Translations under genes and position numbers: made by a program
Shown here: positions 12,140 to 63,464 of the stretch, in pieces
Position numbering within the stretch: the stretch's first letter is position 1
Layout of the letters: the number at the start of each line of letters is the position of its first letter
NCBI RefSeq assembly: GCF_006345805.1
Contig: NW_021836132.1
Span: 1-64,000 of the forward strand
From: Octopus sinensis
Taxonomy: Eukaryota
Direction: 5' to 3'
DNA length: 64,000 nt
Notes under the pieces: model-generated
The model's input: the letters and a program-made list of their open reading frames with translations, nothing else
Databases searched by the model: none
What the model was told of the DNA's origin: nothing

Positions 12140-12225
12140 GTCCCACAACAGCAATTATTATTAATAATTTATTTAATAATAATATTAAAAAATAATAATA
12201 AAATAATTAATTATTTAAAAACAAA

Positions 12226-13144: not shown

Positions 13145-13402
13145 GCCACACGTGAAATAATCAGAATATAAATAAATTTAAATATTTATAAAAACTAAAT
13201 TATTATTAAATTAAATATAAATGTATATTTAATATATAAAAATTTGAATAATTTTATTCTTTTTATATTAAAATCATTTTATATTATAATAAATTTTTAA
13301 TTTAAATTAATTATAAATATAGTTATATTAATTCGCGTAATAATTATAATAACATAAATAATAAAATATTAAATATATTCAAATATATTTGCTGTGGTGT
13401 AA
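13145..13402. promoter_or_regulatory. Probable bidirectional promoter between WAVE-like and MED17
   Basis: 258-bp, almost purely A/T interval between two divergent start codons. Function is inferred from position only. Confidence 0.45.
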
Positions 13403-15283: not shown

Positions 15284-15369
15284 TATATATTGATCTGTAG
15301 AGTTGTTAAATTGGATTAATTAATAGTATAAGTATATATGTAGACAATGCGGACTAATTAGGAAGCCAA

Positions 15370-17240: not shown

Positions 17241-18192
17241 TTGCGTGAATTCACGTGCAACGTCGGTACCCCTCAGGGAGACGCCCTCTCGCCGTTGCTA
17301 TTCGTGATCTATCTGGAGACGGCACTACGAGACCTTCGAAAATTCTATGCTGGCAATATCGTCGAAATTGTATATGCAGATGACGTCGACTTCGTGTCAG
17401 ACGACAAATCGGCCTTACTTCGACTCCTTGAAGTGGCACCTGCTGAGCTGAACAGATGGTTCCTTAAAATGAACGTTGGAAAAACCGACATCGTTGAAAT
17501 CATGAGGATGGAGAGCAGCTCAAGTGAAGCCTGGCGCAAAACGAACAAACTCGGTTCTCTACTTGGGGACGGCCATGATATTGTCAGAAGAAAGGCTCTC
17601 GCTTGGGCCACGATGAACAAGATAAAGAAAGAGTGGATCGGCAAACGACGACTCTGTACGTCACTTCGTCTGAGGATGTATGAAGCCTTTGTCAAACCAA
17701 TCCTGACATATAATTCGGCGACCTGGGGAATGTCTAGTACTGAACAACGTGGACTCGATTCTTTTCACCGCAGGCAACTTAGATCCCTACTGGGATTGAA
17801 CTGGCCTATAAGAATCAACCAGGAATCGCTATACAATAGATGCAGAACTGGCCCTCTGAGTGTGGAAATCGTTAATATGCGGTGGAGGTTATTTGGCCAT
17901 ATTCTACGAATGGACATGCTTGCCCCAGCTAACATAGCAATGGAGGGCTACTTCCTGAAAGAGGGATCGAGCTTCCGTGGACGTCCACGTGTTACGCTGC
18001 CGGAAACACTTGACGGAGACCTGAAATGTGTGAAGAAAAGGCTAAGGAGTGGTGAGGATCTGGACGAGCTGAGGAAACTCGCTCACGACAGAGGAGGTTG
18101 GAGGAGGCTGGTTCAAAGGATTGTTTTTAATGCTGCACGAGTAAAATTATAACTAATATGATTCTACGTATGTTGCAAATAATAATAATAAT
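17241..18192 (+). mobile_element. 5'-truncated RTE-clade LINE with (TAA)n tail
   Basis: GTPQGDALSPLLF, YADD, LDSFHRRQLRSLLG, WRLFGHILR and GRPRVT in a 303-aa open frame; TAA repeats at 18178-18192. Confidence 0.88.
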
Positions 18193-22100: not shown

Positions 22101-23494
22101 TACAAGATATCGCCAAAAGATTGCTCGGCACGATATCGAAAATAATCAGAAGCTATTTAAACGACTGCTCGACGGACAAAAAACCCGGGTCTGGTTGACC
22201 ATCGTTGCTTAATCGCTAAAAAATATTTCAAAGGAATGAGGTTCGAAAAGTGAATGTCCATTTCAACTGTGTTAAATATGCCAAAACTTTTACCAAAAAA
22301 CAAGAAAATCAGTAACAGCTCAGACAATAAAAAATACAATAAAAAATTGGTCTGAATGCTTATCCGCCCACAAAAAGGCCACTTCTTACCAAAAGCAACT
22401 ATTTGTGGTCCTCAGAAGTGGTTTTTGATGACCTCCGGAGTATCCGTATAATAAAATGTTTGTATCATCCAATAGACCACATAAAATGTCTAAACCTACC
22501 TACCAACTCTAACTAAGGATACACGACACGTCATCTCAAGATGTGAGGCCTACTAGTCCAGAAATCAATATGCGAGTTCTCCACATGTATGTAACCAATC
22601 TAGGAAGACGTATCATGAATCCTTAGTTTAAGATGGTAGGAAGACTGTAGAAAAAAAGTCGAACAAGTTAATATAGTCGACAATCAGCCTAACTTGTCCA
22701 CAGACGTGGAAACGAGTAAAGTGATTGGACCAAATGGAAAAGGAATTTTTTCGGTAATTTGGAAGCTCATTGGAAAGGAGACCATATTGTTTACTGTTTA
22801 ATAAATCATTATCAAATGATGTCATGAAAACGTCCAAATTATTGAATCATATTACAGTCCGACCTCTAATTGGGGCGCACCTCCAGGGGTGGGGCACCTC
22901 TTTTTTTGGGGAAAACTCTGTTTTGGGGCATTATAAATTTTTTTAACCAAATTATAAAAAATCAATTAATTTTAACATCTCTATTTGGGGCATTGATTTT
23001 TTATTAAATAAAATTAATTATACCAATTTAAAAAATAAATATTTTAAGACACGTTTCATTTCAAATTTCTTGTGTAATGCCTTTGAATTATGAAACCAAG
23101 TTGAAGATTGCTGATCATCTTTTGAAGAAAGAACATTCTGAGAGGAGATTATCCATAATGTACAATACTAGCAAGGGAACTATTTTTCGTATAAAAAAGA
23201 ATATTCTTCCATTTATCAAAAAAGGATTTCTTTCCTCATCATTAAGTGAAAATAAAAACGGATTTGATGAAAAAGTCCTTGATATTTTTCAGCGTCTAAG
23301 GGATCAGAATGTTCCAGTTTCTGGAACTCTTTTAAAAAAAATTTGAACCATTAATAATCGGAAAATATAGAAATACTAGATGTTTCAAAAAATTTTCCCC
23401 CGAAATTTATGGAATTTTATACTCTTCGTCCAAAAATGCGTGGATGACAAGAGACATTTTTATATCCTGGCAAAAAAATTAATGAAAAAATGAT

Positions 23495-25502
23495 TGTCGC
23501 AGTAAATAGGGATTCCAGGAAATAGCGATCCGTAGTAAATAGAGCGCATAGTATTCAAATATAAATAAATTAAGCAATTTATATGTCTATTTAGTAATAA
23601 TCATTTTTATTTTTGAAAATGTTTTTATTTTTTGCAAAAAATAATAAATTTTTATTTGAGCATGGGATATCTATCGATGTGCAATTATGAAAGGGATCAG
23701 ATTATTGATTATCTAGTCAATGCGAATTTACCGTCAACACTCAGTACCGCCAATGAAATTCGTTCCTTCAGGCTCCGGGCGAGTAAGTTTATTCACTTTC
23801 CGCCGAATCTTATGTTTAAACGTGGAGTTGATCATTTTGTCCGATTTTTTACTGTTGAAGAACAAGAACAACTTTATGATTATGTCCGGTTGTGTCACCT
23901 GGATACGGGGCATCCAGGTCGAGATAAATTATTCAATCATATGAAGAACTTGGCATATGGAATTAGCATAGAACATGTGAATCATGTTCTAAGTGCATGT
24001 ACAACTTGCATAGCTCGTCGTACGCTCGCAACCAGGAGACAAATTACTCCAATAATTGCCAAGTTTTCACGAGAAAGGCTGATTATCGATCTTGTGGACC
24101 TAAGATATTACAGCGATCAAAATAGTGGCGAAAAATGGTTGCTGGTGATAATGGACTCGTTTACGAAATACTGTTGGACTTCAGCACTGAAATCAAAGAA
24201 CTCGGCTGATGTGATACCGAGGATACGAAGTGTTGTTCTTTCTTTGGGGGAAGTATTCATAATACATACCGACAATGGACTTGAATTCTGCAACTCGCGG
24301 ATGACGCAGTTGTGCGAAGAATTTGGAATTCGCCATGTCAGGGGGAGGGCCCGATGTCCCTGGATACAGGGTCAAGTGGAACGACTTAATCAGACACTCA
24401 AATGGATGCTCAGTTCGACGTTATTAACCAACGGGAATGGATTTCGTTGGATTGATATCCTCGAAAATATAACATACGCATATAATACAAGGATACACTC
24501 TACAACGCGCTTTTCTCCTGTTCATTTGATGTATGGCCCACGGATTAGAGAACAAATGGCTCGAGGTCATACTCAGGCACTCATTGAATATATTGATTCC
24601 ATCAATCAACTTGACTACAATGAAGAGCCAAGAACCGAGCAAATTCAACAAGAACTACATGGACTTGATGTGGAAACAAACGACAACGAGATGGATCGAC
24701 TTGTAGTAGCTTCTGCAGCAGCCGAAGATTTACGAGATATTGCGAGGAGGAATACTAATAGTGCTGCTGAATCCATGAGGAGACGATCTAATTGGAGGAA
24801 TGATATCCTTGACTTTCCTCTGGGGACGAAAGTGGTCATCCACACCGACACAGATACGAATACAACAACACGCCGTCGACCATTCCACGAACATTTGGAT
24901 TGTACTGAATATACTGTCGTTGGGATTTTACAGCACGACAGGGTCCAAATTAGTTCGACGAATATGTTGATCAATCATGAGGCCCCTTACGAGATCGATA
25001 TTAATAGACTAGCTATCGTTGGAAAACTATAAAAATTTTGTTTCGGAATAAACTTCTTTATATCTTAAATTTTTGTTCTTTTATGATTGCAATCGAAAAT
25101 AGACAACTATTTGCTATTTCAAAAAAAAAAGAATTTGAATTACTTTTCCATATTTTCATTTTTGTTTAAATAAAATGAAATCGAAACTAAAATACACTCC
25201 ATAAAGATTTAAACGCGAAATTGACTAAATTGTTAACAAAAAGCGTCATTTAAACATTTAAAAAAATTAACAATTCAAACAATAAACGAATCTATTCTTA
25301 AGCAAATATTTTCATTATTCCTGTACGATTTTAAAGCAGATTTTGTAGTAAGCTATTTATTAATTTATAAAATTATCAAATTAACGAAAAAATCGTCCTG
25401 CACAGTATTTGTCTTTATAGATTTCTCTATTTGGACAATATAAAATTTTATAATTATTTTACTTCGGATCGCTATTTCCTGGTATCTCTATTTACTGTAA
25501 CA
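23495..25502 (+). mobile_element. Complete Ginger-like (retroviral-integrase) DNA transposon
   Basis: TGT..ACA termini with about 45-bp imperfect TIRs (TGTCGCAGTAAATAGGGATTCCAGGAAATAGCGATCCG), perfect 5-bp TSD ATGAT at 23490-23494 and 25503-25507, single integrase ORF, no LTR or RT. Confidence 0.9.
23632..25032 (+). CDS. Intact integrase-type transposase (HHCC + rve DDE), first ATG at 23662
   Basis: CHLDTGHPGRDK..CTTC zinc-binding domain; IIDLVD, HTDNGLEF and QGQVERLNQTLK catalytic D,D,E; YNTRIHSTTRFSP. Confidence 0.92.
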   Translation: MQKIINFYLSMGYLSMCNYERDQIIDYLVNANLPSTLSTANEIRSFRLRASKFIHFPPNLMFKRGVDHFVRFFTVEEQEQLYDYVRLCHLDTGHPGRDKLFNHMKNLAYGISIEHVNHVLSACTTCIARRTLATRRQITPIIAKFSRERLIIDLVDLRYYSDQNSGEKWLLVIMDSFTKYCWTSALKSKNSADVIPRIRSVVLSLGEVFIIHTDNGLEFCNSRMTQLCEEFGIRHVRGRARCPWIQGQVERLNQTLKWMLSSTLLTNGNGFRWIDILENITYAYNTRIHSTTRFSPVHLMYGPRIREQMARGHTQALIEYIDSINQLDYNEEPRTEQIQQELHGLDVETNDNEMDRLVVASAAAEDLRDIARRNTNSAAESMRRRSNWRNDILDFPLGTKVVIHTDTDTNTTTRRRPFHEHLDCTEYTVVGILQHDRVQISSTNMLINHEAPYEIDINRLAIVGKL

Positions 25503-27930
25503 ATGATTATTCAAAAAAGAAAAATCTTAATGTTATTAGATAACGCTGCTTGCCACAAAATATCGACATTTAGCAACGTTGATTTTTTATTTTTACCAAA
25601 AAATACGATACCAATACTTCAACCATTGGATGCTGGAATCATTAAAAATTTCAAGGATAATTATTTGAATTGTCTAATTGATTTTTTATGTTTTCAAGAC
25701 GACCAGGATTTGTTTATAGAGTCTTTATCCAAATTAAATTTGCGGCAAGTGGCAACAATAATCTCAGATGCTTGGAATAATGTATCCGCGGATATTATTT
25801 ATAACTGCTGGCAAAAGGTTTTTCGACAATCTCCATCAGACTCGAGTTGCATAAATGAATCATCTGAAGAAATATTTAATAATGTTATTGATGAATGTTT
25901 TGATGAAATAGAAGATAATGATCCAAATATCTATGAGAATATAAGCTGCGAACCATCAATATCACAAATTTTAAGTTTGATGGAAAACTTAGAGACAAAC
26001 ATCTTTGATTTGATTCCAAATTCTCTTCATGATTTTTATGAATTCAGAAAGAAAGTGTCGTTAGGAATTAAATATAAATATGGAGAAAAATTAACTGATT
26101 ATTTTAAAAAATAATGTTCTTTTTCTTTATTTATTGAGCTTTTTGAAAAACCTCTTTTTTGGGGAAACCTCTGATTTGAGGCACTTAGTGCCCCATTTAG
26201 AGGTCGGACTGTAGATGTAAAAAAATTCGATAAAAAGATAAACCATTAAAAAACTTTGAGGAATTAAAGAATTTTCATACAATAAAATTTCAATAAATAT
26301 AGAAATAGTAAAGAAATAGGGTCTGTAAAAAAGTCAAAACAAAATTAAATAGTTAAAATGTACAAAAAGATTAAATTATTGTGAAAATAAAACCAATTCA
26401 ATTACAAAATATCGAATATTATAAGAAATTCTGTAAGTCAACAATATATTTAATCAGTTTTAATACAGACTTTAACCATTAGAAAATAAACTTAAAAAAT
26501 AAACAACAACAAAAAGAATTGTAAATAACAACGTGCTAATATTTTATTATAATATATTTAAAATTTCAATTTATTTCTTTCATAATTTATTAGTTATGAA
26601 AAATTAAAAGTCTTAGAAAAGTCTTATTCTATTATTTCATGGTGAAATATTCAAATAAAAAGCTTGCCGTAACCAGTTTATTTTGATTGAGGTACTGTCA
26701 GTCTAACTACAGCAAAGCCCTGCTAGCATGCGATTACGTACTAGACCAACTACAAGCTTTTCAAAAATAACAAAATCAGTATAATTGCGGATGCTTGAGT
26801 ATCCATAACAGGATCTGATTCGGTCATAGTTAGGCGAAACTTTTGTGGCAGTTATTAACCAATTTGCCCTAACTATAAACATAAAAATTGCTTCCCCCAG
26901 TTTTTTTGCCAATCATTTGAATATAAAATTTGAAATGCACCGCATTCACTAAAACTTCAGAGGTAGAAGAAATTATAATGAAACAGCTATGCGTAGTTTA
27001 AACAACCCCCAAAACATATGAAGACGTGGTTAGGACAGAAAAACAAAGATCAGAATGACGTGAGTTCAAATTTACAATCAGATTGACTATATACATGTAA
27101 GAATTAATTGAAATATATATTGGTATTCTGCAAGGCGTCTTCTTATCGCCAATATTCTTTGATAAAAAGTCGTATTTCTATTTTTCAATCTCATCGACAC
27201 AAATAAAAAGTGAATGTATCTCACTAGCTTATACCTTCTGACATAATCAAATGACTTAATTCGAAACTTTGTCAGGAATTCTAATTAAATGACGTATTTT
27301 TTGCAGTCTGTAGCTTTATAATATGTCGCAAAATACGCTTCCAACAATCCCATGCTGTGAATCATGGTGACCTTCATAGTTGACAGGGTTGATATGGTGA
27401 CCTACATAGTCAAACACTAATTACTAACTTTTGTATTCACAATCGATAAATAAATACAATCATATTATTAACTAAAATCACCCTGATCGTATGGCGGAAT
27501 ATAATAACGCATATACATAGAATCAGACGGCTGAGATTTGACAAGCGTGCACGCTAGCGGAGCGTCGCGTTTCTTTTTGTGTTCATTTCTTTCATGAAAC
27601 TAAACCAAATATAAGAGCTATTTATCTGGTCAACGTAGACATCAGATCTGTATCTACAGAAGAATTGTCCCACAATAGTCCCCTGGGGTAACACTCCTAG
27701 GCGGCCACGACTAGAAAGCCAGCAGATCCAAAAAGATCACACCATTACAGACACTAATTACTAACTAAAGTAACCCTGATCGTATGGCGCAATATAATAC
27801 TAAATCAGACAGTCTGGAAAATACAAATCAAAAGTAACTAACATATTAAAACCATCTTAATCTAACCACGTGAAAAACCATAGTTGATAACGTTTAATTA
27901 TAGAGTATTCAAAACAAGAAAGAGAACGAG

Positions 27931-29184
27931 TTAATTTAAGAGTATATTTTTCTCGTAGGGCACCCCAGTGTCACTAGGCTCGAGAGCAGATTTTCTAATC
28001 TTGAAATTTTCATACATAGCACTGACAAGATCAGTAACGACAATATCCGTAGAATTATGTGAAATAAGTCTCATGGCAAAAACCCCATCAGACCTCAAAT
28101 AGTTGAGGACAAAGTCCCTAAGAGTGGAATACATATCCCCCTCATCAATCAGTTCATCCCGAATGTGCTTCCTGATGTAGTTAATACTGTCACTTTTGAA
28201 CAGCGAATACCAAACCCACTTGCACAAACTAAAGGCATTGAAACAGACTGCCATTATCAGCCAAAACCAATAAAATGCAAAAATTGCCTCTGAGAATAAA
28301 TTTATCGACAACACACATTGCACTGTGTATCGATGACCTATGACTTCATATCCCATCTCCCTCACGTTAAAGTCACACAATGTGATTCGTGGGAAGTAAT
28401 AGGACCCCTTAAAACTTTCCCCATTTATGAAATTCTGGACCAATCTGATTCCATACCCATTTACTACTCCATTTGACAAAAGCATGTCGATCAATATGAA
28501 CTGTGCCACTGTATTTAATAGGTACATGCTCTTTGTGGTAACGTACAACAATGTGATGTAGTTTCCGTACTTCCGGCCTGTACAAACGCAGGCAGCCCGC
28601 ATTATTTCCTTCACAAAATCAACCCTCCTGGTGTTAGGCCTGTTCCACCGCTTCCTCATCTCCAAATAACGGTCAAAATGTTTAGTAAGCATCTTCACAC
28701 AGTTGTCCTTAGTGTCCATATTCCCTGCATCGATGTACTGGATTGATATGTTTATTATGTTGTCCAAATTCATTCCACTGCTCTCGTTATTCGCCCTCCA
28801 AAATAAACATGGGAGTTGGTAAAAAAGTGCCAATCCGAGTAGAATGAAAGGCATCCATTGGTAGTACCGCAGTTGAGGCTTGTCCTTCAGGCTGTTGGTC
28901 TCGGGGACCATTTCGTCCATGGATATGTAGTAAGTGTTCTTTACCCAGCAGATGTTGCTTGTATAACGAATATAATTTCCTAATTAATTTGTTATTAATT
29001 AATTTAAACCTGTGAATTGTGCTGGGCACCAACATTCTATTGGTTCGCCGACATATTGTTTGGTGGTGACCACAACTGCGAATAAAATTAGAAGCATGGA
29101 TGTGTAGATGTGGTTGAGACGGTCTGTCGCGTCGTCGTCCTTTCGGTTCCCTGCACTGCTCCTTATCACGTTTAAGAGATCCAT
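27931..29184 (-). CDS. inx: Innexin (gap-junction protein), two coding exons
   Basis: DDDATDRLNHIYTS, KQYVGEPIECWCPAQFT|G, YYQWMPFIL, YFPRITLCDF and QCVLSINLFSE..F.WFW; 30-nt intron at 28980-29009. Confidence 0.95.
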
Positions 29185-39049: not shown

Positions 39050-39584
39050 TCCTGATAAAAGGTTTTAGCTTTAAATAATGATTACAAATGGATTTTAACA
39101 GTAATCGATGTTTATAGTTTATAGTAGGTTTTTAAACAATTTGTTTAGATTTGCATTCGTCAGACCAGATTTTCATAAATCTTCAAACGAAGTATGCAAC
39201 AACTTAAGATCGCTTTTCTACCTATACGGGGTGGGCAAAATTTTGCAATCAGATAATGGCTCAGAATTAAAAAACGTGTCTCTAAGAAATCTTCGTGAAG
39301 ATTTCAACGCAGTTCATATACATGGAAAACCAAACAATCCTCGTACACAGGGGATTGTAAAACATTTTAATCAAACCACCACAAGAAAACTTTCCAAAAT
39401 GATAGACAAAGATGAAAAAAAGTGGCTGAAAATTTTGAAAAATCTAGCGTACTGTTATAACAAGACTGTACACTCATTTTCAAGTCAGAGTCCTTTTGAA
39501 AGATATCGAGGGATAAGCGGAATAAACACTAATGTTGCAGGTTATAATTATCAAATTATGTTCTTAGAAAATATTAGTGTTTGA
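39050..39584 (+). mobile_element. Ginger-like rve integrase fragment with a 21-nt intron
   Basis: YKWILTVIDVYS R|FAFVRP, ILQSDNGSEL, PRTQGIVKHFNQT and YNKTVHS; intron at 39128-39148. Confidence 0.8.
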
Positions 39585-39675: not shown

Positions 39676-40112
39676 TGTGACATGGGCCAAATGATACGTA
39701 TGGGATGCGCGTTACACTGACCTTCAATTAATGTTAATCTGTCAATTTATCGATAAACTTCAAACAATCTTAAAAAAAATCTTATTATTGAATTATCAAT
39801 TATAAAAATAATTAATTTAATTAAGCTTTTTAATCCTGTCCATCCCGACTATAGACTTTTCCCCATTTGAATCTTTAATCTATTAAATAAATAAATTTAA
39901 AACTACCTCTACGCGATAATTCGACAAAATTTCAACATACGCTATTTCCATCTGGAGTTCCAAAATCTTTTTTAATTCGAATCTAGTTATTAATTTTTTA
40001 TTTCTTACTTTATCACCGACATTATAATCATACTTACTATTATGAACATTCATTTTCCTGTTCATAGCTTTGTAATAATTAGAAGTTTCACCAATAGAAG
40101 TCTCATGTCACA
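39676..40112 (-). mobile_element. Small Ginger-like derivative
   Basis: TGTGACATG..CATGTCACA ends; flanks TACTA/TATTA (4/5 TSD match); contains a YNVGDKVR integrase C-terminal remnant on the minus strand. Confidence 0.55.
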
Positions 40113-41157: not shown

Positions 41158-42225
41158 TTGGAGTTTAATACACTTATTTATTTGAAAAAAATAATCATTG
41201 AAAACAAGTCTAGTGAAATGAAGAGTAATGAAGTGATGGATGTCTTGAAAAGTGAAGCAATTGCAAGGATTAAGAAGCTTGCTAATACAAAGCTAAATTC
41301 TGGAAATTTCTTTAAATCAGTTAACGAATATGCACTATCGATTTATAATTATTATTCATCCCAAAATGTACAGACATTTATTTCTAGTAAACATAATTGG
41401 GCTTTGACGGTCACAAGAACATTTCTAGAAGCCAATATACCTTTATATAAACTGATGCATCTTTCCATAATACGTTTGTTTCAAAATGATACCTTTACTC
41501 TCCCTTCAGAATCTACATGCAGGTCGTGTGTCAAAGAAATCGTTACAGATAAAATTAATCAAATTATGAATTCCTTAAGGTTTTGTTTTAAAGTAAATTG
41601 TAGTGGCGTATATGTTTCCATGGTCATTGATGAGGCTCAAATTAATGGGTCACGTTTTCTGGTATCCTTGATGGGGAATATAGAATTTCCGAAAAAACTA
41701 TATTTAATATCCTGCAAAAAGTTAGACGATCCACCCACTGCTTCTAAAATTTGCGTTGAAGTCGATGAATTGATTAAAAATATGAACATTCACCGTGATA
41801 AATTTGTTTTGTTGGTTTCAGATGCAGCAAGATATATGACAAGTGGTAAAAATTTAATTAATTTTTTAGCTGGAATATCATTAAAAATGATTTATCCAAA
41901 TCTTTTTCATATAACATGCGTATCTCATTTGCTTCATAATTGTGCTTTAAGAATAAAGTCACATTTTGGAGATGTGGATGAATTAATTTCAAAAATCAAG
42001 GCGGCAATAGTAAAAAATAGGGGACAGAAAGAAATGTTTTCAAAAATTTGGCAACCACCTGATGTGGTTGTCACAAGATGGGGTAGCTGGCTATCAGCAG
42101 CTAAATATTATTCCGAAAATCTTCCTGAAGTCATTAAAATTGTATCAAATTTTAGTGGAGACGGAATATTAGTTAATAAGGTGAAAACTAATATGATCGT
42201 TGGTTTGGGATTCAACGTGTGTTGA
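41158..42225 (+). mobile_element. Chimeric ORF: REL-retrotransposon RT segment fused to a hAT (DUF659-like) transposase
   Basis: The first ~68 aa (RIKKLANTKLNSGNFFKSVNEYALSIYNY) are typical of R2-like RT thumb regions. The remainder has VIDEAQ, LLVSDAARYM, HITCVSHLLHNCA and VVTRWGSWL hAT motifs. Confidence 0.7.
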
Positions 42226-42716: not shown

Positions 42717-45700
42717 ATTTATGGAAAGGATTTTGATCATATTTCAACAATTTTACATGAGAATCAACGTTCAGCTTCGGCAATAAAGAGAAAATGGGAA
42801 AAGATGTCATGTGATAAAAAGTTGTTAGAAAAAGTGTCCAAATATTTATGGAAAGGATTTTGATCATATTTCAACAATTTTACATGAGAATCAACGTTCA
42901 GCTTCGGCAATAAAGAGAAAATGGGAAAAGATGTCATGTGATAAAAAGTTGTTAGAAAAAGTTTCAAAATATTTATGGAAAGGATTTTGATCATATTTCA
43001 ACAATTTTACATGAGAATCAACGTTCAGCTTCGGCAATAAAAAGAAAATGGGAAAAGATGTCATGTGATAAAAAGTTGTTAGAAAAAGTGTCCAAATATT
43101 TATGGAAAGGATTTTGATCATATTTCAACAATTTTACATGAGAATCAACGTTCAGCTTCGGCAATAAAAAGAAAATGGGAAAAGATGTCATGTGATAAAA
43201 AGTTGTTAGAAAAAGTGTCCAAATATTTATGGAAAGGATTTTGATCATATTTCAACAATTTTACATGAGAATCAACGTTCAGCTTCGGCAATAAAGAGAA
43301 AATGGGAAAAGATGTCATGTGATAAAAAGTTGTTAGAAAAAGTTTCAAAATATTTATGGAAAGGATTTTGATCATATTTCAACAATTTTACATGAGAATC
43401 AACGTTCAGCTTCGGCAATAAAGAGAAAATGGGAAAAGATGTCATGTGATAAAAAGTTGTTAGAAAAAGTTTCAAAATATTTATGGAAAGGATTTTGATC
43501 ATATTTCAACAATTTTACATGAGAATCAACGTTCAGCTTCGGCAATAAAAAGAAAATGGGAAAAGATGTCATGTGATAAAAAGTTGTTAGAAAAAGTGTC
43601 CAAATATTTATGGAAAGGATTTTGATCATATTTCAACAATTTTACATGAGAATCAACGTTCAGCTTCGGCAATAAAGAGAAAATGGGAAAAGATGTCATG
43701 TGATAAAAAGTTGTTAGAAAAAGTTTCAAAATATTTATGGAAAGGATTTTGATCATATTTCAACAATTTTACATGAGAATCAACGTTCAGCTTCGGCAAT
43801 AAAAAGAAAATGGGAAAAGATGTCATGTGATAAAAAGTTGTTAGAAAAAGTGTCCAAATATTTATGGAAAGGATTTTGATCATATTTCAACAATTTTACA
43901 TGAGAATCAACGTTCAGCTTCGGCAATAAAGAGAAAATGGGAAAAGATGTCATGTGATAAAAAGTTGTTAGAAAAGTTTCAAAATATTTATGGAAAGGAT
44001 TTTGATCATATTTCAACAATTTTACATGAGAATCAACGTTCAGCTTCGGCAATAAAAAGAAAATGGGAAAAGATGTCATGTGATAAAAAGTTGTTAGAAA
44101 AAGTGTCCAAATATTTATGGAAAGGATTTTGATCATATTTCAACAATTTTACATGAGAATCAACGTTCAGCTTCGGCAATAAAAAGAAAATGGGAAAAGA
44201 TGTCATGTGATAAAAAGTTGTTAGAAAAAGTGTCCAAATATTTATGGAAAGGATTTTGATCATATTTCAACAATTTTACATGAGAATCAACGTTCAGCTT
44301 CGGCAATAAAGAGAAAATGGGAAAAGATGTCATGTGATAAAAAGTTGTTAGAAAAAGTTTCAAAATATTTATGGAAAGGATTTTGATCATATTTCAACAA
44401 TTTTACATGAGAATCAACGTTCAGCTTCGGCAATAAAAAGAAAATGGGAAAAGATGTCATGTGATAAAAGTTGTTAGAAAAAGTGTCCAAATATTTATGG
44501 AAAGGATTTTGATCATATTTCAACAATTTTACATGAGAATCAACGTTCAGCTTCGGCAATAAAGAGAAAATGGGAAAAGATGTCATGTGATAAAAAGTTG
44601 TTAGAAAAAGTTTCAAAATATTTATGGAAAGGATTTTGATCATATTTCAACAATTTTACATGAGAATCAACGTTCAGCTTCGGCAATAAAAGAAAATGGG
44701 AAAAGATGTCATGTGATAAAAAGTTGTTAGAAAAAGTGTCCAAATATTTATGGAAAGGATTTTGATCATATTTCAACAATTTTACATGAGAATCAACGTT
44801 CAGCTTCGGCAATAAAAAGAAAATGGGAAAAGATGTCATGTGATAAAAAGTTGTTAGAAAAAGTGTCCAAATATTTATGGAAAGGATTTTGATCATATTT
44901 CAACAATTTTACATGAGAATCAACGTTCAGCTTCGGCAATAAAAAGAAAATGGGAAAAGATGTCATGTGATAAAAAGTTGTTAGAAAAAGTGTCCAAATA
45001 TTTATGGAAAGGATTTTGATCATATTTCAACAATTTTACATGAGAATCAACGTTCAGCTTCGGCAATAAAGAGAAAATGGGAAAAGATGTCATGTGATAA
45101 AAAGTTGTTAGAAAAAGTGTCCAAATATTTATGGAAAGGATTTTGATCATATTTCAACAATTTTACATGAGAATCAACGTTCAGCTTCGGCAATAAAGAG
45201 AAAATGGGAAAAGATGTCATGTGATAAAAAGTTGTTAGAAAAAGTGTCCAAATATTTATGGAAAGGATTTTGATCATATTTCAACAATTTTACATGAGAA
45301 TCAACGTTCAGCTTCGGCAATAAAGAGAAAATGGGAAAAGATGTCATGTGATAAAAAGTTGTTAGAAAAAGTTTCAAAATATTTATGGAAAGGATTTTGA
45401 TCATATTTCAACAATTTTACATGAGAATCAACGTTCAGCTTCGGCAATAAAAAGAAAATGGGAAAAGATGTCATGTGATAAAAAGTTGTTAGAAAAAGTG
45501 TCCAAATATTTATGGAAAGGATTTTGATCATATTTCAACAATTTTACATGAGAATCAACGTTCAGCTTCGGCAATAAAGAGAAAATGGGAAAAGATGTCA
45601 TGTGATAAAAAGTTGTTAGAAAAGTGTCCAAATATTTATGGAAAGGATTTTGATCATATTTCAACAATTTTACATGAGAATCAACGTTCAGCTTCGGCAA

Positions 45701-45869
45701 TAAAGAGAAAATGGGAAAAGATGTCATGTGATAAAAAGTTGTTAGAAAAAGTTTCAAAATATTTATGGAAAGGATTTTGATCATATTTCAACAATTTTAC
45801 ATGAGAATCAACGTTCAGCTTCGGCAATAAAAGAAAATGGGAAAAGATGTCATGTGATAAAAAGTTGTT
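42717..45869 (+). repeat. Tandem satellite of about 25 units of 127 bp (a few 126 bp), derived from Myb-domain coding sequence
   Basis: Near-identical units ATTTATGGAAAGGATTTTGATCAT..GTGTCCAAAT; the plus frame encodes IYGKDFDHISTILHENQRSASAIKRKWEKMSCDKKLL. Confidence 0.97.
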
Positions 45870-51858: not shown

Positions 51859-51959
51859 ACGTATTTTTATTAATTTTAGTGGTTATCCATTACAAATTAA
51901 TTAAAAAATTACTTTTATTTAAAAAAACTACTAAGTTAAATTAACAATATCAGCGTAAT

Positions 51960-52140
51960 TCTAAAAGCCAACCCTAACACTAACCAAACCCTAACACTAA
52001 ACATAATTAAGTTAATTCTAAAAGCCAACTCAAACACTAACCAAACCCTAACGCTAAACATAATTAAGCCTAATTCTAAAAGCCAACCCTAACCCTAACC
52101 AAACCTTAACGCTTTACGTACCCAACCCTAACCCTAATTG
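51960..52140 (+). repeat. Three-unit minisatellite (about 58 bp) with CCCTAA-like hexamers
   Basis: CTAAAAGCCAACCCTAACACTAACCAAACCCTAAC.. repeated three times. Confidence 0.8.
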
Positions 52141-55949: not shown

Positions 55950-56180
55950 AAGATTCTTTCAATGCGAAGCCGAAACAATTCCAAGTTATCTTCAACTTGA
56001 AATAATTGAACTCCAATCAGATAATATTCTAAAAGATAAATATGAAAAACAGAATATTATTCAATTTTATAAATATTTAAATTCTGATCAGTTTCCAATT
56101 TTGAAACGATACGCATGCGGATTTATAACTACTTTTGGTACAACATACCTTTGTGAACAAACATTTTCAAGAATGAAATA
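55950..56180 (+). mobile_element. hAT transposase 3' part, left half (split by the 56181-63173 insertion)
   Basis: YLQLEIIELQSDNILK..FPILKRYA..FGTTYLCEQTFSRMK; continues at 63179. Confidence 0.88.
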
Positions 56181-56579
56181 TGTCACATGGGCGACTATGT
56201 CGCTATGGGCAGCCAGTCCTTTTACGTGTTTCTATGGAAACCGCAGAAAAGGTATTAAATATTGAATATAGCAATTTATATATGGAAGAGTGTAGATTAA
56301 TCAATTATTCTAATTTAAAATTACATTTGAATTATCTTTTAAAAATGGCTTACCCAAAAGTATATTAATTTTAACAGCGTGGTTACTCACACTTTGTGAT
56401 GTCTGGGTTTAAGGGTTACGTCAGAAATATTAACGAATACAATCAAATTAAGGAAGCGTTAATCGGGATATTCCCGGAGGATATGAATGCTCGAAGCAAA
56501 CACCGGTTGGCCAAAAAGGCTTTTAATTTTTGTCAAAAATGTCTGAAGAATCGTCAGCAGAAACATCATTTAATTTCGA

Positions 56580-57662
56580 GTTAGGGTTACTTTAGGGTTT
56601 GGGTTAAGGTTAGGGTTAGATTTTGAATATTTATGTTGTCACTTGCCAACGTTAGGGTTTGGGTTAGATTTTGAATATTTATGTTGTCACTTGCCAACGT
56701 TAGGGTTAAGGTTAGGGTTAGATTTTGAATATTTATGTTGTCACTTGCCAACGTTAGGGTTTGGGTTAGATTTTGAATATTTATGTTGTCACTTGCCAAC
56801 GTTAGGGTTTGGGTTAAGGTTAGGGTTAGATTTTGAATATTTATGTTGCCAACGTTAGGGTTAGGGTTAGATTTTGAATATTTATGTTGTCACTTGCCAA
56901 CGTTAGGGTTAAGGTTAGGGTTAGATTTTGAATATTTATGTTGTCACTTGCCAACGTTAGGGTTTGGGTTAGATTTTGAATATATTTATGTTGTCACTTG
57001 CCAACGTTAGGGTTTGGGTTAAGGTTAGGGTTAGATTTTGAATATTTATGTTGCCAACGTTAGGGTTTGGGTTAGATTTTGAATATATTTATGTTGTCAC
57101 TTGCCAACGTTAGGGTTTGGGTTAAGGTTAGGGTTAGATTTTGAATATTTATGTTGCCAACGTTAGGGTTTGGGTTAGATTTTGAATATTTATGTTGTCA
57201 CTTGCCAACGTTAGGGTTAAGGTTAGGGTTAGATTTTGAATATTTATGTTGTCACTTGCCAACGTTAGGGTTTGGGTTAGATTTTGAATATTTATGTTGT
57301 CACTTGCCAACGTTAGGGTTTGGGTTAAGGTTAGGGTTAGATTTTGAATATTTATGTTGCCAACGTTAGGGTTAGGGTTAGATTTTGAATATTTATGTTG
57401 TCACTTGCCAACGTTAGGGTTTGGGTTAAGGTTAGGGTTAGATTTTGAATATTTATGTTGTCACTTGCCAACGTTAGGGTTAGGGTTAGATTTTGAATAT
57501 ATTTATGTTGTCACTTGCCAACGTTAGGGTTTGGGTTAAGGTTAGGGTTAGATTTTGAATATTTATGTTGTCACTTGCCAACGTTAGGGTTAGGGTTAGA
57601 TTTTGAATATATTTATGTTGTCACTTGCCAACGTTAGGGTTTGGGTTAAGGTTAGAGTTAAA
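56580..57662 (+). repeat. Satellite of telomeric hexamer blocks alternating with a constant AT-rich spacer
   Basis: 21 blocks of TTAGGG/TTTGGG/TTAAGG separated by 20 copies of AGATTTTGAATATTTATGTTGTCACTTGCCAACG or its minor variants. Confidence 0.95.
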
Positions 57663-57870
57663 GTTGTTACAAACTTTGCAAAAAATTTGATGTAAATTAT
57701 AATTTGCTAATGTTGCAATTTATATTATCAAAAATAAAAATAATTCACATTATAATTTGCTAATGTTGTAAATAATTTTACTATTTTAAAGCAAGCATGG
57801 TTCAAATATAAAACATCATTTTCTCAAAAATTTAAAGTTCAATCATTAGTTCGGATCGCTTGCCTTTATC

Positions 57871-59666
57871 TATCTGGAAACATATTCTACAAAAATCGTC
57901 TCAAACAATAGGAAAACTCACATGCCAAACATGAATGTTGAAATCCTACTAAGGAAAAAACAATGTCTAAGGAACAAACTCCGGCGCTGCGCAGATTTTC
58001 GTGACCGGTCCGTTTTGGAAAGTGAAATCTTCACCATTACGGAAGAAATAAGAAAATCGGCGAAGGTGGCGAAGGATAAAAAATGGAATACTGAGTGCAA
58101 AAAGCTACATAAAGGAAGTCCAAATTTTTGGAAGGTCTACTCGAAATTAACCTCGACGTCTGAGAAAACTATACCTAAACTGCTAAAACAAGATGGATCC
58201 CCTGCATCTCATGAAGAAATCCCGAACATATTTGCTGATAGTCTCAAAAGAATACAAGAAGTCAATCCGGATACAAATCTATCTGATTCAGCTTTGTTTG
58301 ATATGGAAAAAGAGTTGGAAGACAATCTTAGCTCATTACCAATGTGCTCGGAATCTATAACGTGCAAAGACGTGGAAAATGCAGTTAGATACTCCAAAAA
58401 TAACGCTCCGGGAAAGGACAAGATAACCATGCGCATGTTCAAAGAAGCTCCCAAGCAACTTTACGAATATTTGGGATGTCTCTTCTCCCGCAGTGTGAGC
58501 TTGGGATACGTCCCTTCTTCATGGAAACTGACGGAGGTAAGGATGATACGGAAGCCTGGAAAACCTGGTTACTTGGCGACAAGTTATAGGCCTATAAGCC
58601 TAATTCCTACCATCAGTCGAATAATGGAAAGGGTAATGTTTGAACGACTCTCTGAACACGTCGAGAGAAATGGTTATCTCAAAGACGTGCAGTGGGGCTT
58701 TCGGAGGGGTCGTTCCTGTGCTGACTGTCTTTATACACTCAATTCGTCGATTGTAAAGGCTCTGGATTTCAAAGAGTGTCTGACAATTGTGTCTCTAGAC
58801 ATCTCAAAAGCCTTTGATATGGTTTGGCACCTCGGTCTCCTTAGACATCTGGCGAAGTGTCACATAGACAAAGGACTATTCCTATGGCTAAAAGACTTCC
58901 TCCGCGACAGGCGCTCTGTGATAAGCTTTCTGAACTATGACTCGGATGAACTGAAACTTAAAAGAGGCGTCCCTCAAGGATCAGTCCTCAGTCCTCTATT
59001 ATTCAACATTGTGATGAGCAATCTGCCGTCTCCTGTCAACACACGGACGGAAATTTTGATATACGCCGATGATGTTGTAATCCTTGACATTTCATCGAAA
59101 CCTGCCTTATCCGAACAAAGGATTATATCATATATGAATACAGTGGAGCAATGGTGCGATGAAAATATGTTCATTATTGCGCGTGAGAAGTCCGCATTAC
59201 TGAGAATCACAGAAAGCAGAAATTTAATAAATTTACCGTGCCTGATCAAGAACATACCTCGACAAAACTCAATTAAATATCTTGGCTTGTTCATCGATGA
59301 AAAGGGAAACTATCTCGAAAACGCAAAATTAAGTAAAAGGAAAGCAACTAATGCTCTGTTCTGCCTGAGGAAGTTAAATTTGGAGCCTGATACTTTCCTC
59401 TACGTTTTCAATACGGTGATCCTACCGGGACTACTATACGGAAAAGAGGGATGGTACTTCTCTAAAAAGAAGGACACCATCTTAACTAAATTTGAAAAGT
59501 CTCGCAGGCTCGCTTTGAAGCTTGCTTACCACCAAAAAGTTGAAGATCCAATCCCCCTGTGGCTTGAAAGTAAATCCTCCATGGTCGGTGAAACTGTCGA
59601 AAAAGCTATAAGTGGTTATAAATCCAACTCAATTGTCACTGGGACGTACCTGCAGAGGTAGAAAAG

Positions 59667-59706
<40 letters not shown>

Positions 59707-59830
59707 ACTTGAGGGGGTCTCTTTTTTTTCTGGGAAGAAGTCGATAGGGTAGTCCTATTGTTTCATTATACAAACTCCCCCCTAACCTTTAACCCTTCTC
59801 TGTTTCCAATAAAACTTCCTTCCTTCCTTC
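57871..59830 (+). mobile_element. LINE copy B (5'-truncated within ORF2)
   Basis: Appears identical to 61123-63069 apart from homopolymer lengths and one base; flanked by CTTGCCTTTAT at 57859-57869 and 59831-59841. Confidence 0.93.
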
Positions 59831-59842
59831 CTTGCCTTTATA

Positions 59843-60286
59843 TGCCCGATTAAAGGAAAAACTGAGAAAAAATGTATAAACTGCGGTCTGAGTGGGCATT
59901 TGGCTTGCTACGGTGGCTGCTCTTCAGCTAAGGCAGCCACTGAACAACTAAAAAAGCAGCTCAGTGCCAGGGACAGACTGGCCAAAGCAGAACACTCAAA
60001 AACTGTATGGTCAAAAGCGGAGGCCGTTGAATCTGTATGGCGAAAACCCACAATTTCCCGCTGTTTTGACTCCTCAACGCAAACAGATGTTAGTGAAGAC
60101 GCAACTTTGCCTCCCAATACACAACACACAGAGCCTCCAACCCGCTTTAAGAGGAAAGCACCAACTATCGACGTTGAGCTTACCTCTATGATTCGCAAAA
60201 TAATCGCTATATGCGGTGAAAAAGGCCTCGATATCAACAATCTGTTGTCCCTTTCTCTTGGAAGGGAAAGGATTGATCAGGCGTGA
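59843..60286 (+). CDS. LINE ORF1 C-terminal part (gag-like zinc knuckle)
   Basis: CPIKGKTEKKCINCGLSGHLACYGGC knuckle; frame open to TGA at 60284-60286. Confidence 0.8.
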   Translation, partial: CPIKGKTEKKCINCGLSGHLACYGGCSSAKAATEQLKKQLSARDRLAKAEHSKTVWSKAEAVESVWRKPTISRCFDSSTQTDVSEDATLPPNTQHTEPPTRFKRKAPTIDVELTSMIRKIIAICGEKGLDINNLLSLSLGRERIDQA

Positions 60287-63069
60287 GCCCCTTTCTGTCT
60301 ATTATCGCTGTGAACGCACGTTCTCTAAAGAGAAGGCGTTCAGAGATTGAGGATATGTTATCCCATAACCCCGTGGACCTTTTGATCGTAAACGAAACAA
60401 AAATCAAAAAACATGATGATTACTACTTGGATGGCTATCGTTCCCTTGATATTAAGTGGAAGCCGGGCTCGATCGCTGGAACAGGCACTTCTATCTACTA
60501 CAAATCAACTCTAAGGGTGAAAAATCTAAAAATTGTGTCCGAGGAATTGTGTGAATTCCTCACAATCGACGTCCTTCTGGAAAAAGGGTGGGTAACAATC
60601 GGAGGGATGTACTCAAAATCCCTTTCCAATTATTCATCGCTTATCAAGGACTTTTTTGCCGATAAACACAATCATTTGTCAATACTCCTCGGGGATCTAA
60701 ATGCCAAATGCACATCTTTTGGCTGTCTGAGAACCAACAGGGATGGCATCATTCTTAAGAAGCTTTCAGAATCTCTCAGTTTCTCGGTCATCACATCAAA
60801 AACCCCAAATCATTACTCACCAGGAGGGTGGGACTATTTGGGCGTAGCATTGGTCTCTATGTCTACTCTTCAATTTATGGAACAACCGTACACCTTAAAT
60901 GATATTGGAAGTGACCATCTACCAATTTTATACAAACTCAACCTTGGACCTTTAAAGGGTAAACCAACTTTTATACGATATAACCTCTCGACTATAAACT
61001 GGGAACACTACCGAAAATGTTTTACACTTTATCTGAGCAATTTCGCTCCTAAACTTGACGAAAATTCTTCATCTGAGGACCTCGAGAAGTCTAGCAATTC
61101 CCTTATTGGATACATAAAGTCTTATCTGGAAACATATTCTACAAAAATCGTCTCAAACAATAGGAAAACTCACATGCCAAACATGAATGTTGAAATCCTA
61201 CTAAGGAAAAAACAATGTCTAAGGAACAAACTCCGGCGCTGCGCAGATTTTCGTGACCGGTCCGTTTTGGAAAGTGAAATCTTCACCATTACGGAAGAAA
61301 TAAGAAAATCGGCGAAGGTGGCGAAGGATAAAAAATGGAATACTGAGTGCAAAAAGCTACATAAAGGAAGTCCAAATTTTTGGAAGGTCTACTCGAAATT
61401 AACCTCGACGTCTGAGAAAACTATACCTAAACTGCTAAAACAAGATGGATCCCCTGCATCTCATGAAGAAATCCCGAACATATTTGCTGATAGTCTCAAA
61501 AGAATACAAGAAGTCAATCCGGATACAAATCTATCTGATTCAGCTTTGTTTGATATGGAAAAAGAGTTGGAAGACAATCTTAGCTCATTACCAATGTGCT
61601 CGGAATCTATAACGTGCAAAGACGTGGAAAATGCAGTTAGATACTCCAAAAATAACGCTCCGGGAAAGGACAAGATAACCATGCGCATGTTCAAAGAAGC
61701 TCCCAAGCAACTTTACGAATATTTGGGATGTCTCTTCTCCCGCAGTGTGAGCTTGGGATACGTCCCTTCTTCATGGAAACTGACGGAGGTAAGGATGATA
61801 CGGAAGCCTGGAAAACCTGGTTACTTGGCGACAAGTTATAGGCCTATAAGCCTAATTCCTACCATCAGTCGAATAATGGAAAGGGTAATGTTTGAACGAC
61901 TCTCTGAACACGTCGAGAGAAATGGTTATCTCAAAGACGTGCAGTGGGGCTTTCGGAGGGGTCGTTCCTGTGCTGACTGTCTTTATACACTCAATTCGTC
62001 GATTGTAAAGGCTCTGGATTTCAAAGAGTGTCTGACAATTGTGTCTCTAGACATCTCAAAAGCCTTTGATATGGTTTGGCACCTCGGTCTCCTTAGACAT
62101 CTGGCGAAGTGTCACATAGACAAAGGACTATTCCTATGGCTAAAAGACTTCCTCCGCGACAGGCGCTCTGTGATAAGCTTTCTGAACTATGACTCGGATG
62201 AACTGAAACTTAAAAGAGGCGTCCCTCAAGGATCAGTCCTCAGTCCTCTATTATTCAACATTGTGATGAGCAATCTGCCGTCTCCTGTCAACACACGGAC
62301 GGAAATTTTGATATACGCCGATGATGTTGTAATCCTTGACATTTCATCGAAACCTGCCTTATCCGAACAAAGGATTATATCATATATGAATACAGTGGAG
62401 CAATGGTGCGATGAAAATATGTTCATTATTGCGCGTGAGAAGTCCGCATTACTGAGAATCACAGAAAGCAGAAATTTAATAAATTTACCGTGCCTGATCA
62501 AGAACATACCTCGACAAAACTCAATTAAATATCTTGGCTTGTTCATCGATGAAAAGGGAAACTATCTCGAAAACGCAAAATTAAGTAAAAGGAAAGCAAC
62601 TAATGCTCTGTTCTGCCTGAGGAAGTTAAATTTGGAGCCTGATACTTTCCTCTACGTTTTCAATACGGTGATCCTACCGGGACTACTATACGGAAAAGAG
62701 GGATGGTACTTCTCTAAAAAGAAGGACACCATCTTAACTAAATTTGAAAAGTCTCGCAGGCTCGCTTTGAAGCTTGCTTACCACCAAAAAGTTGAAGATC
62801 CAATCCCCCTGTGGCTTGAAAGTAAATCCTCCATGGTCGGTGAAACTGTCGAAAAAGCTATAAGTGGTTATAAATCCAACTCAATTGTCACTGGGACGTA
62901 CCTGCAGAGGTAGAAAAGAAAAAAAAAAAAAAAAAAAAAAATTTACTTGGGGGGGTCTCTTTTTTTTTCTGGGAAGAAGTCGATAGGGTAGTCCTATTGT
63001 TTCATTATACAAACTCCCCCCTAACCTTTAACCCTTCTCTGTTTCCAATAAAACTTCCTTCCTTCCTTC
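59844..63069 (+). mobile_element. LINE copy A (5'-truncated within ORF1), intact ORF2, (TTCC)n tail
   Basis: ORF1 end plus APE-RT ORF2; 3' UTR with an internal A-run, AATAAA and TTCC repeats; flanked by CTTGCCTTTATAT at 59831-59843 and 63070-63082. Confidence 0.95.
60283..62913 (+). CDS. LINE ORF2: APE endonuclease + reverse transcriptase, 876 aa
   Basis: AVNARSL, VNETK, LLGDLNAK and GSDHLPI (APE); SYRPISL, QWGFR, LDISKAFD, GVPQGSVLSPLLF, YADD and KYLG (RT). No stops. Confidence 0.96.
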   Translation: MSPFLSIIAVNARSLKRRRSEIEDMLSHNPVDLLIVNETKIKKHDDYYLDGYRSLDIKWKPGSIAGTGTSIYYKSTLRVKNLKIVSEELCEFLTIDVLLEKGWVTIGGMYSKSLSNYSSLIKDFFADKHNHLSILLGDLNAKCTSFGCLRTNRDGIILKKLSESLSFSVITSKTPNHYSPGGWDYLGVALVSMSTLQFMEQPYTLNDIGSDHLPILYKLNLGPLKGKPTFIRYNLSTINWEHYRKCFTLYLSNFAPKLDENSSSEDLEKSSNSLIGYIKSYLETYSTKIVSNNRKTHMPNMNVEILLRKKQCLRNKLRRCADFRDRSVLESEIFTITEEIRKSAKVAKDKKWNTECKKLHKGSPNFWKVYSKLTSTSEKTIPKLLKQDGSPASHEEIPNIFADSLKRIQEVNPDTNLSDSALFDMEKELEDNLSSLPMCSESITCKDVENAVRYSKNNAPGKDKITMRMFKEAPKQLYEYLGCLFSRSVSLGYVPSSWKLTEVRMIRKPGKPGYLATSYRPISLIPTISRIMERVMFERLSEHVERNGYLKDVQWGFRRGRSCADCLYTLNSSIVKALDFKECLTIVSLDISKAFDMVWHLGLLRHLAKCHIDKGLFLWLKDFLRDRRSVISFLNYDSDELKLKRGVPQGSVLSPLLFNIVMSNLPSPVNTRTEILIYADDVVILDISSKPALSEQRIISYMNTVEQWCDENMFIIAREKSALLRITESRNLINLPCLIKNIPRQNSIKYLGLFIDEKGNYLENAKLSKRKATNALFCLRKLNLEPDTFLYVFNTVILPGLLYGKEGWYFSKKKDTILTKFEKSRRLALKLAYHQKVEDPIPLWLESKSSMVGETVEKAISGYKSNSIVTGTYLQR

Positions 63070-63173
63070 CTTGCCTTTATATTAGTTGGCCTTTTAGTAA
63101 TATTTGCTATGTAGTTGCCATGGAAACACGTAAAGGCCAGGTTGCCCATAGGGGTCTGATCACCCATGTGACA

Positions 63174-63464
63174 AAATATGTAAAATCCAAATATCGAGCA
63201 AACTTGTCGGATGAGCACTTACACTTTCTTTTGATAATCGGGACAACAGACTTGACGCCTGATTACAATAAAATATATAAAACGAAAAGTCAGTTTCATC
63301 ATTCTCATTAAAAGCTAATGTTTAAATCTTTTTTTGTTATTCTGTCTTAGTCGTAGTTAAAAAATTAGGAACATTATTAAATCTAATTGATTTTACACTA
63401 TGGCCCATGGTCATCTACCAAATATTCTATCCGGCCCGCGTTGTCAAAAGTTTGGAGACCCCTA
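63174..63464 (+). mobile_element. hAT transposase 3' part, right half, with terminal repeat
   Basis: KYVKSKYRANLSDEHLHFLLII..PDY; ends GGCCCGCG..AAAAGTTTGGAGACCCCT, a typical hAT right end. Confidence 0.85.

Follow-up and report, generated by a model that had tools for sequence, protein, structure and literature searches.

Two differently truncated copies of one LINE family share a single target site inside an old DNA transposon of Octopus sinensis

Several retrotransposons of the long interspersed nuclear element (LINE) type are known to reside inside DNA transposons. Tx1 lies in the piggyBac-type element Tx1D, and the crocodilian Tx1-Mar LINEs and SINEU-3 lie in Mariner-N4_AMi (Kojima, PMC4494074). 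In SINEU-3 and Tx1-Mar, ‘tandem insertions sandwiching a TSD’ (target-site duplication) were taken as sequential insertions (PMC4494074). Other LINEs with an apurinic/apyrimidinic-type endonuclease (APE) home to microsatellites, such as Kibi to (TC)n, Koshi to (TTC)n, Waldo to (ACAY)n, and Mino to (AC)n (PMC3812793). A repeat tail other than poly(A), combined with a 3' stem-loop, is a hallmark of stringent-type LINEs, for example UnaL2 of the L2 clade with its (TGTAA)n tail (PMC3747384), and recently active families of both CR1 and L1-Tx1 have been described in O. vulgaris (PMC13282606). Here, we analyze a tandem LINE array in a stretch of 64,000 nucleotides of Octopus sinensis DNA (contig NW_021836132.1, positions 1 to 64,000 of the forward strand; hereafter ‘the window’). 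Two near-identical but differently truncated LINE copies, which we call A and B, occupy one target in an old DNA transposon, the host element.

The 11-bp target sequence CTTGCCTTTAT is found at positions 57859, 59831, and 63070 of the forward strand. These are three exact copies, each at a LINE border, and a pattern search of the 64-kb window that tolerated one mismatch returned no further copy. The middle and right copies are longer and both read CTTGCCTTTATAT (13 bp). The array spans about 5.2 kb, with both LINEs in the same orientation, head to tail, in the order target (11 bp), B, target (13 bp), A, target (13 bp). The left target copy (57859–57869) has unique host-element DNA upstream and a single untemplated C (57870) downstream, which separates it from LINE B. 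The latter (57871–59830) is 5'-truncated and contains the reverse transcriptase (RT) part of open reading frame (ORF) 2, with the stop codon at 59659–59661, the 3' untranslated region (UTR), and a (TTCC)4 tail. The first base of the middle target copy (59831–59843) is also the last base of this tail. LINE A (59844–63069), truncated at its 5' end inside ORF1, carries an ORF1 fragment, an intact ORF2, a 3' UTR with a hairpin, and again a (TTCC)4 tail. The right target copy (63070–63082) runs on into host-element DNA. The two tails (59816–59831 in B, 63055–63070 in A) have exactly four units each, and no other run of at least three TTCC units occurs in the 64-kb window.

LINE B corresponds to the 3' 1.96 kb of LINE A, bar one substitution and two homopolymer length differences. 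The alignment of 57871–59843 with 61123–63082 has 1974 columns with one mismatch and two gaps. All three differences are located in homopolymers of the 3' UTR (A37 versus A23, T8 versus T9, and GAGGGGG versus GGGGGGG), while the 596 shared codons of ORF2 are identical. The 5' ends are unlike: A begins within ORF1 at 59844, and B begins at codon 281 of ORF2, the equivalent of position 61123 in A. The left unit thus lacks the first 1281 bp of A, with the break no more than 2 bp from the end of the target copy. An earlier note on this DNA, made from the sequence, had reported the three target copies, their order, and the different 5' truncations, all of which we recover; its description of the overlapping parts as identical has to be softened to near-identical. 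It had also given TSDs of 13 and 11 bp that share one left edge. These lengths are recovered too, but the first three target bases (CTT) continue the register of the (TTCC)n tail, which fixes the nick position only within 3 nt. The true duplications may therefore be 8–11 and 10–13 bp long, and the shared edge holds within the same 3 nt.

In both copies the stop codon of ORF2 is immediately followed by an uninterrupted A-run (59664–59703 in B, 37 nt; 62916–62941 in A, 23 nt), which is missing from the homologous 3' UTR of a sister family described below. It may be a lineage-specific expansion, or its length difference may be a homopolymer error of long reads.

Judged by its sequence context, the 11/13-bp repeat is target DNA, i.e., a target-site duplication, and not the LINE’s own 3' end. 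Upstream of the left copy the DNA is unique and does not belong to a LINE (...TTCGGATCG), and the left flank, a single repeat, and the right flank make a continuous host sequence when joined. The sister-family 3' UTR, which is homologous to that of A, ends ...AAATAAAG TTACC TACC TAC and then passes directly into its flank, with nothing like TTGCCTTTATAT. These three observations led us to reject the 13-mer as part of the LINE itself, a possibility that the earlier note had named as a threat to its own reading. The probability that the 11 bases upstream of the 5' junction of B equal the 11 bases after the tail by chance is ~3e-7, by our own calculation from the base frequencies of the window.

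The reading that we favor, with somewhat better than even confidence, is that one young LINE family inserted twice at one nick by separate target-primed reverse transcription (TPRT) events, that these insertions were directed by sequence, and that the transposon around them is incidental. Two independent TPRT events at one site, as proposed before, fit the array best because the copies differ in 5' truncation and in the offset of the second-strand cut (11 versus 13 bp) and because each copy has its own, unique junction. A bottom-strand nick would have been used twice in ...GGATCG^CTTGCCTTTATAT..., in the interior of an old non-autonomous Ginger-like element, and each event would have left its own truncation and its own second-strand offset. 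A could have come first, followed by B into the left duplicate, or B could have come first, followed by A into the right duplicate; both orders yield the same structure and are indistinguishable here.

Integration of this kind would be sequence-directed, most likely through a sequence-preferring APE endonuclease combined with a (UUCC)n tail in the RNA that anneals to the CTT(G)CCTT strand once this is nicked, in the manner of stringent-type CR1/L2-like LINEs that have microsatellite tails. Apart from one inserted G, the start of the target, CTT-G-CCTT, follows the tail register CTTCCTT, which bears out the resemblance of tail and target start that had been pointed out. Cutting to the left of CTT would expose a bottom-strand 3' end (...AAGGCAAG-3') able to pair with UUCC repeats. 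The site would survive insertion, with the left duplicate keeping its upstream context and the right duplicate gaining a (TTCC)4 run, and the transposon would probably be merely a place where such a target sequence happens to occur. The numbers point the same way. Were the LINE unbiased, 1000 copies spread over ~5.6e9 strand positions would be expected to give ~1e-4 same-site pairs in the whole genome (our own arithmetic, using the genome size of 2.8 Gb from PMC13282606). A double hit is thus near-impossible for an unbiased LINE, and the effective target space must be small, no larger than roughly N squared over 2 for N copies. Other candidate sites in the window all stand empty, both the two further CTTGCCTT 8-mers and the approximately 20 TCACTTGCC sites of the neighboring satellite, so more than CTTGCC is needed.

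The host element (56181–63173) is a terminal inverted repeat (TIR) element with TGTCA... termini and a 5-bp duplication, AAATA. Its left TIR (56181–56250, forward strand) begins with TGTCACATGGGCGA and is preceded by AAATA at 56176–56180. The right TIR (63105–63173, reverse strand) is followed by AAATA at 63174–63178. The arms are about 65–70 bp long, their termini read TGTCACATGGG..., and they are only about 80% identical, which marks this copy as old. The LINE site is located 91–104 bp away from the right terminus, some 22 bp further in than the recognizable TIR arm, and therefore outside the TIR and not about 40 bp inside it, as had been proposed. We found no ORF in the host element, which consists mostly of satellite and is non-autonomous at best. 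The satellite (56592–57660, forward strand) has 48/203-bp units built from TTAGGG/TTTGGG/TTAAGG motifs, and it is here that the approximately 20 unoccupied TCACTTGCC sites are found. A short related array of CCCTAA-type units lies on the other strand at 51952–52110.

The host element in turn interrupts the frame of a hAT transposase C-terminus, with the upstream part at 55960–56180 and the downstream part (...VKSKYRANLSDEHL...HHSH stop) at 63179–63311, both on the forward strand. Once the host and one of the two AAATA copies are taken out, the frame is open again, ...TYLCEQTFSRMKY|VKSKYRANLSDEHL...HHSH, and the joined frame matches Dimer_Tnp_hAT across the junction with 29.1 bits (Pfam cut-off 21.4). 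Since excision restores a frame that spans the junction, the nesting order is a hAT relic, invaded by the TIR element, invaded by the two LINEs. A further piece of hAT-type transposase with a weak DUF659 match is found at 41158–42225 (forward strand), and the three hAT pieces (41158–42225, 55960–56180, and 63179–63311) may represent one much-interrupted hAT element between about 40 and 63 kb.

Ginger elements have TGTNR...YNACA termini and TIRs of about 50–180 bp, and duplications are 4 bp long for metazoan Ginger1/2 and 5 bp only for TDD-4/5 (PMC2836005). The host has TGTCA... at both ends and arms of about 65–70 bp, in agreement with the first two features, while its 5-bp AAATA fits the TDD-type length and not the metazoan 4 bp. 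Lacking any ORF, this copy does not encode the Gypsy-integrase-like transposase of Ginger elements. The window does contain an integrase-bearing TIR element of the same style (23486–25511), with an ORF (23632–25032) matching rve and H2C2, 54-bp TIRs, TGTCGCAG...ACA termini, and the 5-bp duplication ATGAT. By analogy with this neighbor, whose TGTNR-type termini and duplication length it matches, the name ‘Ginger-like’ that the host had already been given is reasonable. The neighbor is itself Ginger-like, with a TDD-type duplication length in a mollusc. An 11-mer, TTCGGATCGCT, is common to the left flank of the LINEs and the TIR at 25458–25511. We took this as a coincidence, because a search space of this size should yield about one such match by chance and because the two 11-mers lie at different distances from the terminus. 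Two more ends resemble the host TIR, one at 39676–39689 (forward strand, TGTGACATGGGCCA..TATGGG), about 90 bp after an rve fragment (39108–39584), and one at 14534–14547 (reverse strand, TGTCATATGGGTCA); no partner end was found for either.

The coding part of the family is best seen in LINE A. Its ORF1 fragment (59846–60286, forward strand, 146 codons) is open from the first base and has one CCHC-like knuckle, and the intact ORF2 (60283–62913, forward strand, 876 codons) encodes an APE (Exo_endo_phos/Exo_endo_phos_2) and an RT (RVT_1) domain, the latter ending at residue 753. ORF2 has no RNase H domain and no C-terminal zinc knuckle, its last 120 residues containing one Cys and no CCHC motif. 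The two frames overlap by stop and start codons, GTGA in LINE A (60283–60286) and ATGA in the sister family (9929–9932 of its locus), an arrangement that recalls the UAAUG coupling of SART1. Given the GTG and an in-frame stop three codons upstream of it, ORF2 of LINE A has no AUG before the catalytic Asn. This points either to non-AUG coupling or to an A-to-G change of the start codon in this copy or its master, and, octopus being the host, a footprint of RNA editing is conceivable. Each of the two copies lacks its 5' part, and GTG in A stands at the place of the sister family's ORF2 ATG; that the LINEs may be ‘currently active’, as was suggested, has their near-identity as the sole observation in its favor. 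The locus also bears on the debate over which LINE families were recently mobile in octopus genomes.

In the 3' UTR, AATAAA precedes the tail by 2 nt and a putative hairpin is formed by CGATAGG/CCTATTG in A and by CGGTAAG/CTTACCG in the sister family. Changes on both sides keep 5 of the 24 predicted pairs in the two sequences compared, which is suggestive of a hairpin conserved through compensatory changes between the two families. Comparison of the RT with the PDB returned generic matches, with L1 ORF2p (1.8e-19) and R2 (1.4e-17) about equal. For the endonuclease, no solved LINE endonuclease matched at E<=10, and only bacterial ExoIII appeared, at E>1. The nearest relatives outside octopus are unnamed APE+RT proteins of 880–900 aa with 26–30% identity; database names give no clade label, as all relatives are annotated as ‘uncharacterized’ or ‘hypothetical’. 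In its architecture the LINE resembles the CR1/L2 type more than R1 or Tx1, since its ORF2 lacks the C-terminal zinc-finger-like domain that PMC1919474 gives for both of these clades. The R1/Tx1 likeness proposed by the earlier note thus stands for the array behavior, but not for the protein, which has neither the C-terminal zinc knuckle nor a match to a solved LINE endonuclease.

An exhaustive protein search (1.84 bn representatives) revealed only one relative above 50% identity, XP_029653915.1 of Octopus sinensis (74% identity). Its locus contains a LINE of a sister family (6713–15342 of that locus) with about 76% nucleotide identity to LINE A. The copy, which seems to be full length, has a 5' UTR and an ORF1 encoding three CCHC knuckles, but is split by two insertions at about 7751–9643 and 11332–14150, and its APE part was annotated by Gnomon as a 397-aa ‘uncharacterized protein’. 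The ORF1 stretch upstream of the knuckles looks RRM-like by eye and has no Pfam match. The sister tail is (TACC)3, and the copy is flanked by a candidate 10-bp duplication, CAATAAAGAA, unrelated to CTTGCCTTTATAT. It thus resides in unrelated sequence, and the target is not conserved across the wider group. No further copies of the A/B family were found in the window or the fetched loci (tblastn/blastn), in 5.8 bn protein clusters (searched with the full ORF2 and with its C-terminal 350 aa, chosen to catch truncated gene calls), or in metagenome contigs (an exact DNA scan with the 3' end and a back-translated scan). In neither the window nor the fetched loci did we see a paralogous host-element site that is empty.

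Several points weigh against two sequence-directed insertions. There are two events at one locus, so that the basis is a single locus of the family, and the array is known from the contig of one assembly. The equal number of tail units and the identical coding sequence also fit a duplication at the DNA level. The anatomy, the nesting, and the domain content are observed, whereas we infer that there were two events instead of one, the cause of the re-use, the specificity of the endonuclease, and the annealing of the tail. The hairpin is supported by two sequences only, and folding one 3' UTR sequence by itself did not outperform shuffled controls (z = -0.09).

Among the alternatives, dedicated homing to the transposon survives best, although we regard it as unlikely. 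The LINE would then be strictly specific for this Ginger-like family, with most copies at the same position in paralogous hosts. Two insertions at one site around a sandwiched duplication are the known hallmark of such LINEs (PMC4494074; PMC1919474 for Tx1L/Tx1D). The TIRs of the host, its target duplication, and the hAT frame restored on excision identify it as a transposon, and L1-Tx1 is among the LINEs recently active in O. vulgaris (PMC13282606). If transposon targeting were true, a large share of copies should be followed by TTGCCTTTAT or should occupy the same position in the TIR family. However, the window and the fetched loci contained neither a further copy of the LINE nor another copy of the host element, hence no visible enrichment, and the roughly 80% identity of the TIR arms makes the host copy old. 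The sister-family LINE, the only relative found, lies in unrelated sequence with the candidate duplication CAATAAAGAA. In addition, ORF2 lacks the C-terminal zinc-finger-like domain of the Tx1L/R1 type (PMC1919474), and the endonuclease matches no solved LINE endonuclease. The suggestion that the LINE targets a DNA transposon family is thus not supported.

We consider it distinctly unlikely that homing to the tail is the whole explanation, i.e., that B inserted first at a chance site and its (TTCC)4 tail microsatellite then drew A. Tail and target start have the CTT/CCTT register in common, and the absence of other (TTCC)≥3 runs in the window makes the tail of the first copy the best local match. 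Poly(A) tails attract L1 and Alu in an analogous way, and LINEs of the APE type that home to microsatellites are known, for example Kibi at (TC)n and Koshi at (TTC)n (PMC3812793). The duplication made by A, however, takes in all 13 bp of the original target, and each tail consists of exactly four units, which places the nick of A at, and not within, the tail of B. This precision exceeds what annealing anywhere in the repeat predicts, and the first insertion had already chosen a tail-like sequence.

The most novel form of transposon homing, which we think improbable, would make this a CR1/L2-like octopus LINE lineage outside R1/Tx1 that has come to home strictly to one subterminal sequence of a Ginger-like DNA transposon family, its (UUCC)n tail or read-through RNA acting as the guide by pairing with the nicked target. 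If true, molluscs would gain their first LINE of CR1/L2-like type that homes to a transposon, and stringent-type LINEs a natural case of RNA-guided site choice.

Very improbable, in our view, is an origin of the array without a second retrotransposition, either as an assembly error or as a DNA tandem duplication of A plus target followed by a 1.28-kb deletion. The duplication route that we considered is unequal exchange between the 13-bp duplicates. Identical coding sequence, equal tails, and differences confined to homopolymer runs, which are typical long-read errors, would agree with such an origin. A simple duplication would, however, give target-A-target-A-target, whereas the left unit lacks the first 1281 bp, and the break with its extra C has the form of a TPRT 5' junction, so that a second, precisely placed deletion would otherwise be required. 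A simple assembly or tandem duplication was therefore rejected on geometry.

Least credible is a single event with template jumping, an end-to-end ability known for LINE reverse transcriptases (R2), in which the RT would pass from RNA A to the 3' end of a second RNA bearing 12–13 nt of donor read-through: AATAAA 2 nt before the tail would allow donor transcripts to end in the flanking 10–30 nt, but the A-run that a polyadenylated read-through RNA should leave between the middle target and the 5' end of A is not present, more assumptions are needed, and a donor in the same target is still required.

The remainder of the window contains further repeats and pieces of cellular genes. A 127-bp tandem array (24.9 copies, 98% identity) is located at 42717–45869. 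A WH2/WAVE-like ORF pair (12226–13144, reverse strand) represents a piece of a cellular gene among transposons. An exon of a cyclic-nucleotide-gated channel (15674–17077, forward strand) is followed by an unrelated RT fragment (17241–18152), and an innexin exon with 100% identity to an Octopus sinensis protein is found at 27931–28920 (reverse strand). Its gene is placed at 27931–29184 on contig VCDQ01011809.1 (GCA_006345805.1); as these numbers agree with those of the window, the latter is the initial 64 kb of this contig.

As it stands, the locus cleanly illustrates how transposon insertions become nested and shows a signature that is already known. If a narrow target were confirmed genome-wide, a microsatellite-tailed LINE of a mollusc could be added to the few APE LINEs whose insertion is directed by sequence, and would then offer a simple natural system for separating the shares of endonuclease and tail-target pairing, with a bearing on the engineering of LINE-based insertion tools.

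Compared with known systems, the closest likeness in arrangement is to Tx1L/Tx1D of Xenopus, Tx1-Mar, and SINEU-3, where a non-autonomous DNA transposon harbors a LINE of the APE type and tandem copies sandwich a target duplication. The preference of those elements has been documented over hundreds of copies, whereas the octopus case is one locus. Of the features of target-specific LINEs, the octopus array has the head-to-tail copies parted by one target duplication but not the same target in related copies or families, the sister copy lying elsewhere. The Tx1L-type ORF2 is L1-like and, as in the Tx1 clade generally, combines an endonuclease, an RT, and a C-terminal zinc-finger-like domain (PMC1919474), whereas the octopus ORF2 of 876 aa has no such C-terminal domain, its endonuclease has no detectable similarity to the L1 endonuclease, and its element ends in a microsatellite tail. 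Kibi, Koshi, Waldo, and Mino, which belong to the Tx1 and R1 clades, are similar in that the target is like a short pyrimidine-rich repeat, with a related repeat at the LINE's own 3' end, but the octopus target is a single imperfect unit, CTTGCCTT, in unique DNA and not an array. R1Bm, TRAS1, and SART1 share the precise re-use of one nick, a duplication of 10–14 bp, and CCHC knuckles in ORF1. The octopus LINE differs from the R1 clade by the missing C-terminal zinc-finger-like domain, by an endonuclease without similarity to R1Bm or TRAS1 at E<=10, and by a microsatellite instead of a poly(A) tail. The comparison with R1/Tx1 is thus an analogy of behavior only.

In its build the octopus LINE appears closer to UnaL2/CR1, with a tail of 4-nt repeats right after AATAAA, a putative 3' UTR hairpin, and APE plus RT without RNase H. 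The short-tandem-repeat 3' end of stringent-type CR1/L2-like LINEs is present in both octopus families, as (TTCC)4 in A/B and (TACC)3 in the sister. A difference is ORF1, which in the octopus family (whole in the sister copy) encodes three CCHC knuckles. Stringent-type UnaL2/CR1 LINEs are generally regarded as dispersed and not site-specific. Both the pattern and its reading as sequential insertions are already established in other LINEs, so that any novelty would lie, at most, in the type of LINE and in its host.

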